NCBI GenBank assembly: GCA_009103225.1
Contig: RHPI01000638.1
Span: 434,001-498,000, forward strand
Length of the DNA: 64,000 bases
Direction of reading: 5' to 3'
From: Chlorokybus atmophyticus
Taxonomy: Eukaryota > Plantae > Mesostigma and Chlorokybus algae
Shown in pieces: positions 1-8,100 of the stretch (position 1 is the first letter of the stretch; each line of letters opens with the position of its first letter). The notes under the pieces were generated by a model. The model saw nothing but the letters and a program-made list of their open reading frames with translations, did no database searches and had not been told where the DNA came from. The translations under genes were made by a program, and so were the position numbers.

Positions 1-1350
1 GGCGGCATTTCCATCAAATCGAAACCGATTGGCCAACAGAAGGTAAGCGCCTGTGGCGCCTGCAAACACCACGTGCTCCGCTGCTACAGCCTGCGCACAA
101 GTGCCTAGTTGCGCCAACTTGGCGGCAGTAACACAAGCTGGCCCAGAGTTACACTGGACACTGATGCTTGAAACGGTGGATATGTGTTTGTTGGCCACTT
201 TTCGTGTACCACATGGAGACAACTTAGCACAAACCCATGCATGGCTGCAGGCCATTGCATGCTGCTCACAGTTGGATCCGTATCAAAGCTCGAGGCAGTG
301 TGTACCAACACAGATTTCTGTGTAACAGCTGGTTGTGGCAAAGCCACACTGCCCTAATCGCCCGATAGCAAGGTGGCATTTTAATTTGCAGCGTACCTGG
401 AAAAGGAGAGGCAACGACACTGTGGCACCCGCAAGTGCAATCTGAAGAATCCATTTGAAAATGCCGGTCTGCATTGACGCGCAGAAATTAACAGATAGCA
501 CGCAGCACTGTACTCCACCGGGAACATGACACGTGTCCATCAGTCCCACCACTAGTTAATTGTGTACATATACATTTTGGTATCAGGGAGACACGCATGC
601 ACGGTCACGCACGCATGCATTGATAAGTGTTAAAGCGTATACATGGCCACAGCACATTCATGCACACCAAGGAGGCGTGCATGAAGCAACTGCAGCGCGC
701 TGTGACAAAGCTGCTACTTTGTCACATGATGCCAAGGTCTTGACTACATGCACGCCAGCTTGGAAGCAAGTAAGAAAGGGTGAGCACGTTGAGGCAGCAT
801 GCATAGTTGTTGAGAGGCAGTCTCACGCAGCTACTTTGGGGACCGAGTTCTGCAGCTGGCAATGACTGTGTGCGATTGTAGAATGACACGCCGAGTAATG
901 TACTTAAGAAGGCAAGCATACCTGTGGCAGTGCGGCCATGCCACCACGTGTAGTCGAGCTGGTGCTTGCCTCCTCGGCACTGGCTGGAGAGGAGGAGGAG
1001 GAGGAGGAGGAAGAAGAAGACGAGGAGGAGGAGGCAGAAGAAGATGCTACTACACAGCGTTTTCGCAGTTTTGGCCGAGGCCTTTGCCTGCCTACGAACG
1101 CGGGACGGGCAATGCCAGCTGCTCCTGCTTCAGCACCAGGCCGTCTGCAAGAATAACAGGCAGCACCAGCACCAGCACCAGCAGCACCTGCACCTGCAGC
1201 AGCTGGGCCCCGCAGTGCGGCGGCGGTGCTGCAAGACGGCGCAAGGAGCAGCACCGGCGCCGGCCGAGCACCAACCATGTCCACGGCAACTGAACGCTTT
1301 AACAAGCACGCGTTTGTCCACGACGACGACAGCGCTGCTGCCGCCGCCAA
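1..1350 (-). CDS. Putative plastid-targeted protein of unknown function, spliced, runs off the window start
   Basis: ORF 904..1350 begins MAAAAALSSSW..., an Ala/Ser/Arg-rich transit-peptide-like segment, and ends at a CAG|GTATGC donor at 922/921. Further exon-like blocks occur at ~400-470 and ~260-352. Downstream exon structure is unresolved. Confidence 0.5.
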
Positions 1351-1465
1351 CCACCTCGGCTACCCTAAGGAATCCATTGATGCTGCAGCAGGCAAAGCAG
1401 CGATAAATCACGAAACGGAAGAAAGAGCAAAAAGTGAGTGGGAAGCAAGCTTAGAGCGAGGCAGC

Positions 1466-3366
1466 ATGGCGACCATGGGGGCGGCAGCGTCGATGGCGTC
1501 GTTGCCGCCGGAGTGCCTGGCTGCGGTGCTTGTGCGACTGGACGCCGTGTCGCTGCTGCGCCTCGAAGCCACCTGCAAGTGGCTCCGTCAGCAGGCGAGT
1601 TTTAGATTGGTTCCTTGTTTGCTTCCACCCTTTCGTCCCTTGCTTGCTTGCTTGTCAAGAAGCAGCTGTTGCTGAGCGTTAGCAAGTGGGTCTCTGGTGT
1701 TGATCACCAAGGCTGACAGTTCGCGTGCAGCTTGCGAGCGTGTGTTTTGTGCCAGGCGCTGCGGAAGTGTTGACTCGCCTAAGCTTGTTGCCAGGTGCAA
1801 GACAGTTCGCTATGGCGTACGCTGGCTGTGCACCACTTTGGCACAGCTGTGTTGGAAGGCAGGTACGACGCATTCTCAGCTGCATGTTCACAACTACAAC
1901 AATCGCAGATGAACTGGCATGCATGGCATCAATGTCGTTGGAGTTCTGTGCACAAGTCGTCTATAGTGGTAGAAGGCTTTGAAGTATGCTCAGCAAGCTT
2001 ACTGGCCTTGTTGTACGCATCCTATTTGCCGTGAAATGTAGAACTGCAAGCTGAGAGTGAACTACGCAACCAACATCGCCACATTTACTGCAACTGTGTT
2101 AGCTTGTCGTGTATGAAGCATTACATGACACGCTGGCAATAAAAGTACTTGTGCGTCGTATCATCTGAGTATAGTTGTCGCCTTTCAGCGCTTACTTGCT
2201 TGCCAGCATGAGTTTGTGACCGTGCACTGGTTTGCAAGAAGTTGTACTGCCATTCACAGCTACTGGTGCATACAACCTTGCGCAGCAGTTGCATACCACA
2301 CTCACATGTGGGCTTGTGCTTTTGAGCAGTGCAGGAAACTGCAAGACGTTGCACACCTGTGCGTCACGCACAAGTCAAAGCAACATTGAGTGCAGTTGGC
2401 GGCAGTTCTATCTTCATAGAGTCTCACATTGTACAGCCTTGCGAACAACATCACCACTGGACTTGATACAGGAGCACTACACTGATCCGTAAGTACCAAA
2501 AAAGGCGTCTCATGACGCTTGATTAATGAACATATTCTTGACGACTGGGTACCATTTTCACGCTGGTGTTGTTCTTGACAACAGGTGGCAGCACATAGCA
2601 TGCTGCCTGCTCTGCTCACGTACCAGCGGTGGCCAAGGAGTGGGAGATGTCATCACGCACATTCTAGAGGCGCATCCCAATGCTACGGCAGGTATTGGCA
2701 ATGCTCGCTTTGCTTGCACGCATACCGCCTGCTTGTACTCACTTGCTAGCCACTTGCTTGTATGCACAACACATTATGTGTATGCACAGTCATACACGCA
2801 AGCAGGGCTTGATCTGCATCATGTGCTGATTGTGCAGTGTCACACAGTCCTTCAAGCGGATGTAGACACTTTGCGTGGGACTTTGGACATGCTGGGCTTG
2901 CAAGATGTGCGCATGAAAGCTTTGCAAGCCATGTCGCACTCTTTTCTGCATGACGACTGGACCGACCCCACCCAGTTTCATGGGTGCGTGCTGGTGCACA
3001 TGTTTTCACAATGGTACGCATGTGATGAGTTGCCTAACAGGTGCGGCGCTTTCATCAGTGAGAGCTGGAGGATATTTTGCTGTGGCGATACTCGCAGCAT
3101 AACAAATCCAACACTGGCAAAGGTTTGAGCTGCACCTTGATTTATTCATGACACAAGTGGTCTACTGTCTGTTTCTCACTATTTTTCTGTATGCACAGTA
3201 TTGCCGGTGGCTCCATCACAAAAAGCAAAGGCCTGATGTCTGCTTAGCAAGCACGAAGGCAGCAACCTCACATGCAGTCAGGAAGAGGCCGCCTGTGACT
3301 CGCAGCAAAGGCACTGCACCAGTGAGACGAAGCCAACGGTTGCGCAGCTGTTGCTTGCAGTCATGA
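1466..3366 (+). CDS. F-box domain fused to an MBD4-like (HhH-GPD) DNA glycosylase domain
   Basis: Exons 1466-1594, 1795-1862, 2396-2488, 2585-2691, ~2848-2982, ~3041-3122 and ~3197-3366 splice in frame. Product: MATMGAAASMASLPPECLAAVLVRLDAVSLLRLEATCKWLRQQVQDSSLWR (F-box) ...SPLDLIQEHYTDPWQHIACCLLCSRTSGG...HPNATAVLQADVDTLRGTLDMLGLQDVRMKAL...FHGCGAFISESWRIFCCGDTRSITNPTLAKYCRWL. This is colinear with the MBD4 catalytic domain (SPFNLVQE..DPWKLL...NRTSG...LGL...LHGIGKYGNDSYRIFC...KYHDWL). Confidence 0.85.
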
Positions 3367-3481
3367 CTTTGCACAATTATTGTACCCATAGCAGCAATTT
3401 TAATAGTTCGATGTGCTAGACAGGAGTAACTGTAATGTACAATAAATAGGGCTAAGAAAGTTACTGTAGTTTTGGGGGTTA

Positions 3482-4793
3482 TTATGGTGAAGAAAGGGGA
3501 GATGTTAGCGGCTTCATGGGTGACACATATGGCCGAGTGGGGATTGCGCGGTCTGATGATAACCGCATCTTCAGCCGATCTGTGCGCAGCTGGAAGTCGT
3601 CCAGATATCGGAAAAAGTCCTCATCTTTGTGTCCTCGAGCAGGTTCGCTGTAGGTGGACCTGCTATCTGAATAGACACATGATGGTTTAGAACAAGCACA
3701 ACGCGCATGTTGCATGTATGCAACAATGAGAGCCTTGCAAAGCGCGCCCACAGTGCTAACGAGCCAACCCACAGTATCAGCTTTGACAACTGCCATGCCA
3801 CTATTTCTTCTCTATGACAAAACCACATGGCAGCACACACGCCTCTCGTGTGAACATTTCTTGCAGTCAACATGTACCTAATGTGGATCTTCGCGCTGTT
3901 GGTGAGCGCGGACTCGCTGTGACGGGCGATGCCCCGCCGCTGATGCTCGAGCCCGCCGCCGATCCTGGCCTTGGCGACCACGCTGATAAAGACGATGCAC
4001 GCGGCGTGGAGGACAGTGCTGCGCGTGGGGACACAAGCGGCCGAGGGCGTGACGCCAGTCTTTGCACCAAGTCCTGAAGGTATCATGCAAGAAAGGTGGT
4101 GTTTAATGGTTGTAAACTGTTGACACACCTGTGCTTCCTTAACATGTGCTCATTGTCATGCACGAAATACCAATGTGTTTTCTGATGCTCTTACGTCAAG
4201 CTCTTTGCGGTAATGTCGGCCGCTCGTGTCGCCGCTGGCAGTTTCACCTAAAGAGTCTCCCTGCTTGTGTGACAGCGATACCAGTTCAACGACCAATTGG
4301 TAGTCCGCTTAGAAACAGGGATAAAGGTGAGTTCAAAGTACATACGCTTCCAGAGAGAGCGAGAGAGAACAAGCAGTATCTTTACAACCAGCACACTGAT
4401 ATAATGACTAGCAAATTTTGTGTATACCTGCCTTGTGCAGAGATAGTGATAGTATTTAGGTTGCGAAGTTTGTCTTTCACATAATTTCACAAACAGCGTA
4501 CGCACCTGAGCGGCCGCCAGCTGTTTCTCCAGCCTACCCCTCTCAGCCTGGCTGTGCTTCAGCTGGCGCTCCAAGTCCGCCACCTTATCTTTCAGGAGCG
4601 CCACCTCGCATTCCAACTCCAATACTCTGACAGAGGAAGCATGGGTCTTGCCACCCTCTCCTCCTCCTCCCGCCACCGCCGCCGTGGCTGTAGCCGAGTG
4701 CGGCGGCGGCGACAGGCTGCTGAACCTGTACTCGCCTCCCCCAACGCCACTGCCACTGCCACTGCCGCCGCCAGCCCCAGACCTTAGCCCCAT
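3482..4793 (-). CDS. Small coiled-coil protein of unknown function (3 exons)
   Basis: Starts MGLRSG and continues ...RVLELECEVALLKDKVADLERQLKHSQAERGRLEKQLAAAQ, then a Ser/Pro-rich exon at ~3870-4075 and a last exon ...DEDFFRYLDDFQLRTDRLK...SP*. Splice junctions are GT-AG. Confidence 0.65.
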
Positions 4794-5151: not shown

Positions 5152-8100
5152 ATGGCTACTGCGACGGCGAGCCATGCCGACCCCTGGGCCTTCTTGGTAA
5201 GGCTCTGTTCCTGCAGCTTGCTTGCTTGATGGTGCTCGTTTGGGTGTGCATGTGTATGTGCAGCTTGCAAAGCCTGGCTGATTACTTGGGTGGTTGGATT
5301 CAATGGATTGGTGGGTGTTTCAGGAAGATATTGAGGCGCCGAGGTGGGCGGATCTGCTAGCTGAGGCGGGGGAGCAGGTGGCTGAGGGGTGAGTGTTGGC
5401 CTGGTCCGCAAGTTCATTCTGCTGCTTGGACGTTAGCAATCAACTCTGCATGAGTCTCTTGGAGTCTGTTAAACAGTCTCATTTGGGTTTCCAAAAGCAT
5501 GCAAAGAGATCCATCCTAACTCTAGCTCATGCATGTGCTCGCAGGCACGATCCTTGGTTCGACGTCAGCCATCCGTAAGCTGAACCATGGCATTGACTGT
5601 GCACATTGTGTGCTACAGTGGTCAGTGCAATGGTTGACAGCAGCTGAAAGCGCCAAGCTAACTGAATGGTTTTGCAGAGTTCATCAGACGCCTCTGTTTG
5701 AGGAGGAGGCCAGCGGGAGCGGTCGAGGCAGGGGCAAAACCGGTCAGCAGGGAGGGTCCAAGACCCACAACAAGCTGGGCGCCTTCACCAACCTTCGCAG
5801 TCGTGCACTGCGCGTGCAGCGTGAAGTGTAAGCTTCTAGACATTTCACAGCAGCGTGCATTGTAATTACTGCCAATATTACAATGCCAAAGCCATAGCTG
5901 CAGCTTTCTTCGAGTCCTAAGTAAGAACGCCTCTGTGATGGCTATCCTGCAAGCTATCATTCCAGGTTTCAACTATAGTGGGTATCTAGCGATGTCCTGT
6001 CTGTCAAGCACATAGGTGGCACTACCAGAGTGATGGATGTGCGGTTCCAACTTCTTGTTGATGTTTTGCCGCATGGTGTTTACGTTCTTCAAGCAAAGTG
6101 TAGCATAGGTTGAAACTTGGTGTGTCGTGCACCTTTGCACGGTGTTGAACTGGAGCAGTTTTGCATGGTTTGCTTAGCAGAAGAGGTTTCTGACAATGAC
6201 TGCATGTAGCATGCCACTGTGTCCTGAACAGTCTGCTCGTGATGTCCGGCATGCTGTGTCAAGCTCATAGAGTAACCGCGACAGCAACGCTACCTTGCTC
6301 TTGTATGAGAAGTTTTCCCTACTTGCGCAGGTTACCGCCGCCAGCTGAGCTGATCCAGGATGAGCATGGTGACCGCTCATCCTGGGAAGGCATGCATGGC
6401 CTGGAACATACGAGCCCCAACCTCAAGTCCGGGGCATGCACTCCCAGCCCTGAACACAGCCGTACCAGGATACATAGTCCCGGAATTACTGCAGAAAAGG
6501 TGCGAATGTTGTCAGCAACTAGTGTGCAATGCATAAATTCTCTAAAGTGTACGTGCAGATTGTGTGACACACACATACACGCATACTTACGTCTAAGGTA
6601 AGTTTGCTTGTGCTGTGCAGCCAGTGTCAATCGCAAAAGCAACCATACATCAAGGTGGTAGCCGGCATCGCGTTGTAAAGTTTGCTGGAGAGGGCGTTGA
6701 TGAGAATAAGGGACACCATGGCAGTGCATGGGATGCAGATGGCTTGGTGTCGCCGCTGGCCCCTTTGCGGTCACCACTGCAGACTCTCCACCCACCAGGT
6801 TGCGCACAGTGTTGTGTGAGGTTCAAAAGCACTCAAGCACTCAAGCACTCAAGCTTTTCTGTGGATTCGTCCTAATGAAGCTGTGTGCCAGGCTCTCAGC
6901 GCAAGTCTGCACCTTCCGTACGTGTTGGCAGCGGAGCGTTTGATGTGGCAAGGAGGGCCCGCAGTAGTCTGGGTGCTGCTCTTCGTATACAACAGTGAGC
7001 GGCATGATACTTGATGGCATGGTTCCTTTGGCCATACGTACAGCGAGTCAATACACGTTGCTCCTTTGCAGTGAACACGAAGATGCATCCCCGCTCCACA
7101 CCATGCCAAAGGAGCCCCGTGTTGATGAGGAAAGCGAAGAACAAAGCGACTCAGCTGTGGCTGAGGACAGCATAGAAGTTACAACAGTTGACACCAGGCC
7201 TGAGCCCAGTCCAGCTGTCTCCAGGCTGATCAGCCAGTTGAAGGACAGATTGGAGCTTGACGATGATCCCGCTGTGCAGTCCAAACCAGGACCTTCTTTA
7301 ACAATGCCTGAGGACTATGCGCGCACGGCACAGTGGGCTGGCACGTCCAAAACCAAGTGCTCAGCCAGCCACACCATGGCACCGAGTCGCACACAGCCTG
7401 CGGTAAGTTTCGAGCGTGCACACATGTTTACGACAAACAATGCCTCTCATTTGTAACGGTTCTACATGTGTAACGCTGCAGGGCTTAAAACTGGAGCGCT
7501 TCCAGCCTTATGGAAAGCCCGCGGTAACCAGACCCTGTCCCCAGCAAGCAGGGGGACCCCAGAGCCAGAAGAAGGGTGCCACAACAGCGCCTGCTAGAGT
7601 GGGAGGAAAGGCGGCCAAAGAGTTGGCAACAAAGGCGGCTGTCAGCCGATCAATAGAACCGCAGCGACCGAGGCCAGAGCGATCAAAGTTAGAAAGCTCC
7701 AAACCCAGTGCTAGTGTGAGTTTGATAATATGTACGCGCTTGCCTGCATTCCGGCATCAGACTTTGACATCTGTTGTTGCACAGACTGTGCCCAAAGCTA
7801 TTGTGTCTGCCATGCCAAAGCCTGCTGCACCCGCCGTGCACAAACCAGTGGTGTCCAAATCGGCAAACGCCTCTGCACCAACACTGCCAAAGGTCGCCGC
7901 CACAAAGGGCCAGCAAAGCAGGCCCATCATCAGCAGGTCAGTTGAGCCTCAACGACCGAGACCCAAACGCGTGACGGCGCAGCAGGCACCCCCACTTCCT
8001 GAGGCAGACGTAGCTGTCCTGTTGACGGAGGTATGTAGCACATGTACTGTCAGAGGTGTTGCTCATGGACAGCACTCAAAAAAAGGCTGCAAACTTTCTG

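Follow-up and report, generated by a model that had tools for sequence, protein, structure and literature searches.

Gene structure and transcripts of an F-box–MBD4-like gene in Chlorokybus

The DNA analysed here, hereafter the window, is a stretch of 64,000 nucleotides from the streptophyte alga Chlorokybus atmophyticus (assembly GCA_009103225.1, contig RHPI01000638.1, positions 434,001 to 498,000 of the forward strand). It carries a seven-exon gene on the plus strand at window positions 1277-3366, whose spliced open reading frame (ORF) is intact and encodes 345 amino acids. The encoded protein consists of an N-terminal F-box-like motif, a helical linker, a helix-hairpin-helix (HhH) glycosylase-fold domain of the MBD4 type and a basic tail. 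In this expressed and correctly spliced gene, the residue homologous to the catalytic aspartate of MBD4 is asparagine.

The exon structure was checked against Logan contigs from four public runs, which were aligned to window positions 1200-3500. Two transcript-type contigs with the same organism label, X1 (2013) and X2 (2021), span every exon junction, and the coding exons that they cover show no difference from the window; the two data sets stem from separate studies. PMC8611356 assigns the genome strain CCAC 0220 and the 1KP run of 2013 to C. melkonianii; for the 2021 study, a second isolate and further cryptic species were sequenced. The gene comprises the following elements.

1277..1594, plus strand: exon 1, N-terminal extension and F-box-like motif LPPECLAAVLVRLDAVSLLRLEATCKWLRQQ; RNA contigs over 1200-1358 and 1446-1595
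1595..1794, plus strand: intron 1, GC-AG; junction present in the X1 and X2 contigs
1795..1862, plus strand: exon 2, VQDSSLWRTLAVHHFGTAVLEG; end of the F-box and start of the linker
2330..2488, plus strand: exon 3, linker followed by the start of the glycosylase-like domain, SPLDLIQEHYTDP; its Gln corresponds to human Q449
2585..2691, plus strand: exon 4, WQHIACCLLCSRTSGG; its Arg corresponds to the human R468 finger
2848..2983, plus strand: exon 5, DMLGLQDVRMKA, then ...TQFHG; Leu wedge L506 and start of the HhH hairpin
3041..3122, plus strand: exon 6, (G)CGAFISESWRIFCCGDTRSITNPTLAK; Phe in the Tyr540 column and Asn in the catalytic Asp column
3105..3107, plus strand: AAT codon of the Asn, at the position of human D560 and mouse D534; no differences in X1 and X2 over 3040-3120
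3123..3198, plus strand: intron 6, GT-AG; transcript junction 3122/3199
3199..3366, plus strand: exon 7, YCRWLHHKKQ..., basic tail ending RRSQRLRSCCLQS, then the stop codon; not in the public JGI model

Intron 6 lies inside the interval 3041-3215 to which a preliminary description of this DNA, made from the sequence alone, had assigned the substituted catalytic motif. The peptide quoted there is present: the exon 6 segment is continued by YCRWLHH across the spliced junction. The GC-AG splice pair is confined to intron 1, and all other introns of the gene are GT-AG. The start codon in exon 1 is uncertain, with the ATG at 1277 and in-frame ATGs near 1463-1490 as candidates.

The best database match of the gene is the JGI Chlorokybus model Chlat1/2512 (P0001), whose exons are identical to the window. 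The model is wrong in three places: a donor error adds ASFRL after 1594, the intron at 2984-3040 is retained (VLVHMFSQWYACDELPNR), and the exon at 3199-3366 is missed, so that the model ends in ...LAKV. These errors leave the AAT codon at 3105-3107 untouched.

A third contig with the same organism label, X5, is ~7-9 % divergent from the window and keeps all exon junctions. It has 7 differences within exon 3040-3120. By a crude comparison, its domain exons differ from the window by ~4-9 %, versus at least 13 % plus indels in a retained intron. X5 matches both ends of intron 2 (1863-2329) with the middle replaced, and the remaining introns are spliced out; the intron 2 sequence could represent intron retention or an alternative exon of the X5 lineage.

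Domain architecture

The preliminary description treated the protein as an MBD4, an assignment that has to be abandoned. The methyl-CpG-binding domain (PF01429) was not found by Pfam, which returned only the F-box-like motif and a weak HhH-GPD match, and the protein, a paralogue with an F-box, is not the canonical MBD4L of plants and algae. Given that the methyl-CpG-binding domain is missing and the catalytic hallmark fails, as described below, the domain should be classified neither as MBD4 nor as a DNA glycosylase enzyme.

The F-box-like profile PF12937 scores 25.0 bits on the flawed model P0001, against a cut-off of 24.3, and 27-43 bits on the orthologues P0002, P0003, P0005 and P0006. Furthermore, the family profile also matches F-box proteins in the PDB (FBXO31, E 3.3e-05). 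A literature search returned no description of a fusion between an F-box and an HhH-GPD or MBD4 domain. The conserved F-box–glycosylase architecture is a broader novelty than the asparagine substitution itself.

The basic tails of the F-box–MBD4 clade share the terminal motif R-x-(L/I)-R-S, which reads RRSQRLRS in Chlorokybus (3300-3366), RRSQRIRS in P0018 and RVLRS in P0003 and P0005. The tail of P0002 is also among the basic C-termini with this end, and the motif may be a conserved linear motif.

Asparagine at the catalytic aspartate position

When the intron-containing window ORF is used alone, its PDB sequence matches are MBD4 glycosylase domains only (E 0.0025, split by introns). With a seven-sequence family profile, human and mouse MBD4 chains are the sole strong PDB matches (E 1.8e-29). 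The alignment of this profile with human MBD4 is gap-free from RIFC to the C-terminal helix, and the family Asp column falls on human D560. In Chlorokybus, this hallmark residue (the D of GPD) is Asn, encoded by the RNA-confirmed AAT codon, exactly as had been read from the genomic sequence. Six chlorophyte orthologues, including those of Myrmecia, Botryococcus, Elliptochloris, Coccomyxa and Monoraphidium, all have V-(E/V/A)-D-x-x-L-x-x-Y, whereas Chlorokybus has I-T-N-P-T-L-A-K-Y. Gaps in the glycosylase region of the orthologue alignment are confined to the loop before the catalytic residue, apart from the intron retained in P0001.

AlphaFold models were compared with known structures for the Botryococcus orthologue P0003 (pLDDT 89.3) and for residues 66-315 of Chlorokybus P0001 (pLDDT 83.9). 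MBD4 structures are the only strong fold matches for both models (Foldseek TM 0.74-0.89, root-mean-square deviation (rmsd) 1.6-2.1 Å), with TM 0.83-0.89 and rmsd 1.6-2.0 Å for P0003 and TM 0.74-0.82 for Chlorokybus. Thus, the domain is predicted to adopt an all-helical HhH glycosylase fold that is superposable on MBD4. In published MBD4 structures, the C-terminal helix contributes to the pocket and starts with the catalytic Asp. The residue in the catalytic column directly precedes the last helix in both models, being D212 before helix 213-224 in P0003 and residue 244 before helix 245-249 in the P0001-based Chlorokybus model. This location matches that of the catalytic Asp in the published structures.

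Conservation of the DNA-interrogating and active-site residues

Of the 21 columns with at least 85 % conservation in the family as a whole, Chlorokybus retains 18; Q449, L506 and the HhH glycines are among these, and the Arg finger R468 is retained as well. The aligned columns hold FHGCGAF (GxG hairpin), CSRTSG (Arg finger), MLGL (Leu wedge) and LIQE (pocket Gln); the earlier claim that the Gln of LIQE (Gln449) and the Arg of SRTSG (Arg468) are retained is thus borne out by the alignment. The three deviations are the D-to-N change, the loss of the Pro that precedes the Leu wedge (PLGL to MLGL) and one Pro that human MBD4 has as Ala.

Two other features had been cited in support of the earlier interpretation, and both are real but neither is specific to this protein. 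Phe does occupy the Tyr540 column of Chlorokybus, but Phe is the majority state (102 of 145 relatives) and is found in the whole F-box clade. The loop from RIFC to the catalytic column is indeed short, with 8 residues, but it lies within the family range of 8-17 (mode 10), and three other proteins also have 8. In MBD4, the Tyr540 hydroxyl hydrogen-bonds thymine O2, and the active site of Phe-bearing clades may work differently. The Lys562 column is Thr or Asn in most of the F-box clade and Thr in Chlorokybus. Among the named examples, the Tyr540-bearing proteins are canonical animal and plant MBD4/MBD4L.

Could a neighbouring carboxylate take over from the missing aspartate? The preliminary description had considered the Asp of the GDT motif in this role. 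Column conservation does not favour it: of 133 relatives, only 42 have an acidic residue in this column, the others having Q/R/K/H/A, and the clade itself varies between D, H, E, Q, A and further residues. The GDT Asp lies in a loop, six residues before the helix cap. Because of this variability and this position in the loop, it is an unlikely substitute, and the lack of conservation speaks against a family-wide catalytic role.

Rarity of the substitution and phylogenetic position

When 1.84 billion cluster representatives (50 % clusters) were searched exhaustively with the profile, 2661 matches were obtained, and the best 154 were aligned to the family hidden Markov model. Among these best 154, the catalytic column is Asp in 130 and is lacking in 19 fragments, which leaves 135 informative relatives; Asn occurs in Chlorokybus only. 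The Asn is not a chance feature, given that the column is Asp in 130 of the 135. His and Gly appear in two proteins with seemingly mis-modelled C-termini.

Other natural replacements of the Asp were seen in MBD4-like proteins. The metagenomic cluster P0081 has Glu (KEKALKDY, identical in 12 members), and the 128-residue metagenomic protein P0132 has Gln (KQYKLKKY).

A maximum-likelihood tree of the domain places Chlorokybus inside a clade of 35 algal sequences with 98 % SH-aLRT support. This F-box–MBD4-like clade is separate from the canonical Viridiplantae MBD4L clade (Tetraselmis, Sanguina, Dionaea), and both types co-occur in chlorophytes (P0006 and P0183 in Monoraphidium; P0005 and P0184 in Coccomyxa species). 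The preliminary description had proposed to check whether the Asn is conserved in orthologues, and it is not: leaving Chlorokybus aside, the clade has 31 informative members, and 30 of them carry Asp. No other streptophyte has been identified in the clade, and the terminal branch of Chlorokybus is 0.84, versus a median of 0.45.

Within the clade, Chlorokybus is nested among trebouxiophyte sequences (Myrmecia, Botryococcus, Elliptochloris) instead of being sister to all chlorophyte members, with weak support (83-84). This placement could reflect poor resolution or gene transfer.

A canonical Chlorokybus MBD4L was not found by name in the profile search (capped at 8000 scored candidates) or in a search with the Riccia domain, which gave streptophyte MBD4L of Klebsormidium, Chara, Closterium and Spirogloea; the Logan matches that were checked for such a protein all came from other runs.

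Comparison with known glycosylases

The Chlorokybus domain resembles the mammalian MBD4 domain (PDB 3IHO, 4EVV, 4OFA and 6VJW) in its HhH fold; sequence identity is ~28 % with the Chlorokybus model and 31-34 % with the modelled orthologue. The two share the Gln in SP(L/F)xL(I/V)QE, the RTSG finger, the (P/M)LGL wedge, the GxG hairpin, the RIFC helix and the location of the catalytic position before the last helix. Unlike mammalian MBD4, Chlorokybus has Asn for the catalytic Asp, Phe for Tyr540 and Thr for Lys562, bears an F-box-like motif and helical linker instead of a methyl-CpG-binding domain, and belongs to a separate green-algal clade.

The effect of the same substitution has been measured in mammalian enzymes. 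Mouse D534N is inactive on G:U, G:T and G:5-hydroxymethyluracil (5hmU) and binds them like the wild type, for which the dissociation constant (KD) is <30 nM; activity is almost lost in Y514F and is 5- to 10-fold lower in K536A (PMC3458566). In human MBD4, D560N abolishes catalysis, with the thymine inserted completely into the pocket (PMC12073362), and D560A reduces the excision rate >50-fold (PMC3479182). The Chlorokybus protein carries the identical chemical change at the homologous residue. However, its change is natural and stands on a background of Phe at the Tyr540 position, and binding and inactivity of the algal protein would be expected by analogy with these engineered traps.

The closest relatives are the green-algal F-box–MBD4-like proteins, among them P0002 (Myrmecia bisecta), P0003 (Botryococcus braunii), P0005 (Coccomyxa sp. 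Obi) and P0006 (Monoraphidium minutum), which share the architecture, the R-x-L-R-S end and the clade, and orthologue domains are up to 55 % identical to that of Chlorokybus. They keep the catalytic Asp where Chlorokybus has Asn. The canonical plant and algal MBD4L proteins (for example P0154 from Dionaea, P0113 from Tetraselmis, P0184 from Coccomyxa) belong to the same kingdom and have a homologous glycosylase domain but differ from Chlorokybus in forming a separate clade, in having Tyr540, Asp560 and LLNKTSG (Lys for the Arg finger), and in having no F-box.

A precedent for a natural non-catalytic HhH paralogue is Schizosaccharomyces pombe Mag2, a glycosylase homologue that performs no base excision, binds DNA and abasic sites, and exists alongside an active paralogue (PMC4433238). 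Its structure (PDB 4B21) is among the distant fold matches. Unlike the Chlorokybus protein, Mag2 belongs to the AlkA/Mag HhH subfamily and has no F-box.

Proposed function and alternative explanations

We consider it probable that the asparagine is a real substitution at the catalytic position and that base excision is absent or strongly reduced. A single G-to-A transition (GAT to AAT) in Chlorokybus (C. melkonianii lineage) would have converted the catalytic Asp into Asn. Asn is a good helix N-cap; for this reason the fold should not suffer, and the residue would still cap the last helix. However, the carboxylate for water activation or oxocarbenium stabilisation would be gone. With an intact Arg finger, Leu wedge, HhH hairpin and Gln pocket, the protein would bind DNA and flip a G-paired pyrimidine (T, U or a 5hmU-type base) into the pocket. 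DNA binding and base flipping are predicted, and excision is not, because the interrogation residues are intact and the carboxylate is lost. The flipped base would remain unexcised or be excised orders of magnitude more slowly, which would make the protein a natural equivalent of the D560N and D534N traps.

What would the F-box contribute? It could tether Skp1/SCF to the bound sites. The gene structure, expression, homology and fold, as well as the position and rarity of the substitution, are demonstrated by the present data; we infer loss of catalysis, retained lesion binding and SCF recruitment in the Chlorokybus protein, and the simplest model is a putative lesion- or mismatch-binding adaptor without excision. 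If the protein does bind without cutting, it would amount to a naturally occurring D560N trap and to a rare case of a glycosylase fold turned into a non-catalytic reader on a ubiquitin-ligase adaptor motif. Furthermore, the Chlorokybus protein and its Asp-bearing chlorophyte orthologues form a natural pair for addressing the function of the F-box–MBD4 family.

The near-invariance of the Asp in a clade with Phe at the Tyr540 position argues for a functional need for the carboxylate there, and for a genuine change of function with its loss in Chlorokybus. Several observations nevertheless weigh against the reading of a binding protein without excision. The change from PLGL to MLGL might weaken DNA interrogation. 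The clade-wide Phe at Tyr540 and Thr/Asn at K562 provide a background on which the chemistry or the substrate, and hence the effect of the D-to-N change, may differ from mammalian MBD4. Some HhH enzymes, such as TAG of E. coli, have no catalytic Asp and excise labile cationic bases. The Chlorokybus fold model was built from the flawed P0001, with its retained intron and without the last helix, and not from the spliced 345-residue protein. Finally, no other informative clade member, chlorophyte orthologues included, has Asn. The biological weight of the substitution is uncertain, since it has been found in one species so far; it is confirmed for one species label only and may have arisen recently and be nearly neutral or mildly deleterious.

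A more specific form of the proposal is that the protein is a naturally selected, frozen mismatch reader that holds a flipped G-paired T, U or modified pyrimidine uncut while its F-box brings in the SCF ubiquitin ligase. We regard this as speculative and unlikely. The support for a selected state is thin and consists of the intact, expressed and spliced ORF, the retained interrogation residues and the lower divergence of the X5 exons relative to the retained intron. If such a reader exists, the detection of DNA lesions or modifications would be coupled directly to the ubiquitylation of nearby chromatin or repair proteins.

An adaptive sensor role is less likely than a recent tolerated loss, which is a tentative but serious alternative. 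The substitution would then be a neutral or slightly deleterious change in one Chlorokybus lineage, in which other enzymes (canonical MBD4L or uracil-DNA glycosylase (UDG)-type) repair G:U and G:T; there would be no sensor role, and the gene would perhaps be at the start of decay. Such a loss is consistent with the restriction of the Asn to one organism label within the clade, with its origin in a single transition, with the presence of canonical MBD4L beside the F-box paralogue in the chlorophytes named above, and with the above-median Chlorokybus branch. The branch is expected to be long in any case, because Chlorokybus is the only streptophyte in a chlorophyte clade. Moreover, expression, correct splicing and an intact 345-residue ORF speak against such a loss, as do the retention of 18 of the 21 highly conserved columns with all DNA-interrogating residues, the conserved X5 junctions and, on the crude comparison above, the lower divergence of the X5 domain exons. 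Tolerated loss concerns the evolutionary meaning of the substitution and is compatible with the chemical reading, in which excision is absent or strongly reduced.

That the protein is still an active glycosylase, drawing its chemistry from another group (the GDT Asp or a water network) or acting on a labile substrate base that needs no carboxylate, is improbable. The F-box clade retains the Asp but has neither Tyr540 nor Lys562, a combination suggestive of a modified active site, and both the Asp-free TAG-type enzymes and the acidic residue six positions upstream offer conceivable routes. However, the D-to-N change abolishes activity in both mouse and human MBD4, and the near-invariance of the Asp in the clade argues that the carboxylate matters.

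An assembly, sequencing or gene-modelling artefact can be dismissed as extremely improbable, because the errors in P0001, which speak for it, miss the codon, whereas the 2013 and 2021 transcript contigs are identical to the window at the codon and match it exactly over the exon and its junctions.

Additional sequence features

Pfam returned a single weak match on the intron-containing ORF, to a zinc finger, which was judged spurious and discarded. A finger of the zf-4CXXC_R1 type (PF10497) occurs in some streptophyte-algal MBD4L proteins (P0205 from Spirogloea; P0206 / L002). At window positions 975-1045, a short distance upstream of the gene, lies a GAG/GAA triplet repeat that would encode a poly-Glu tract on the plus strand.

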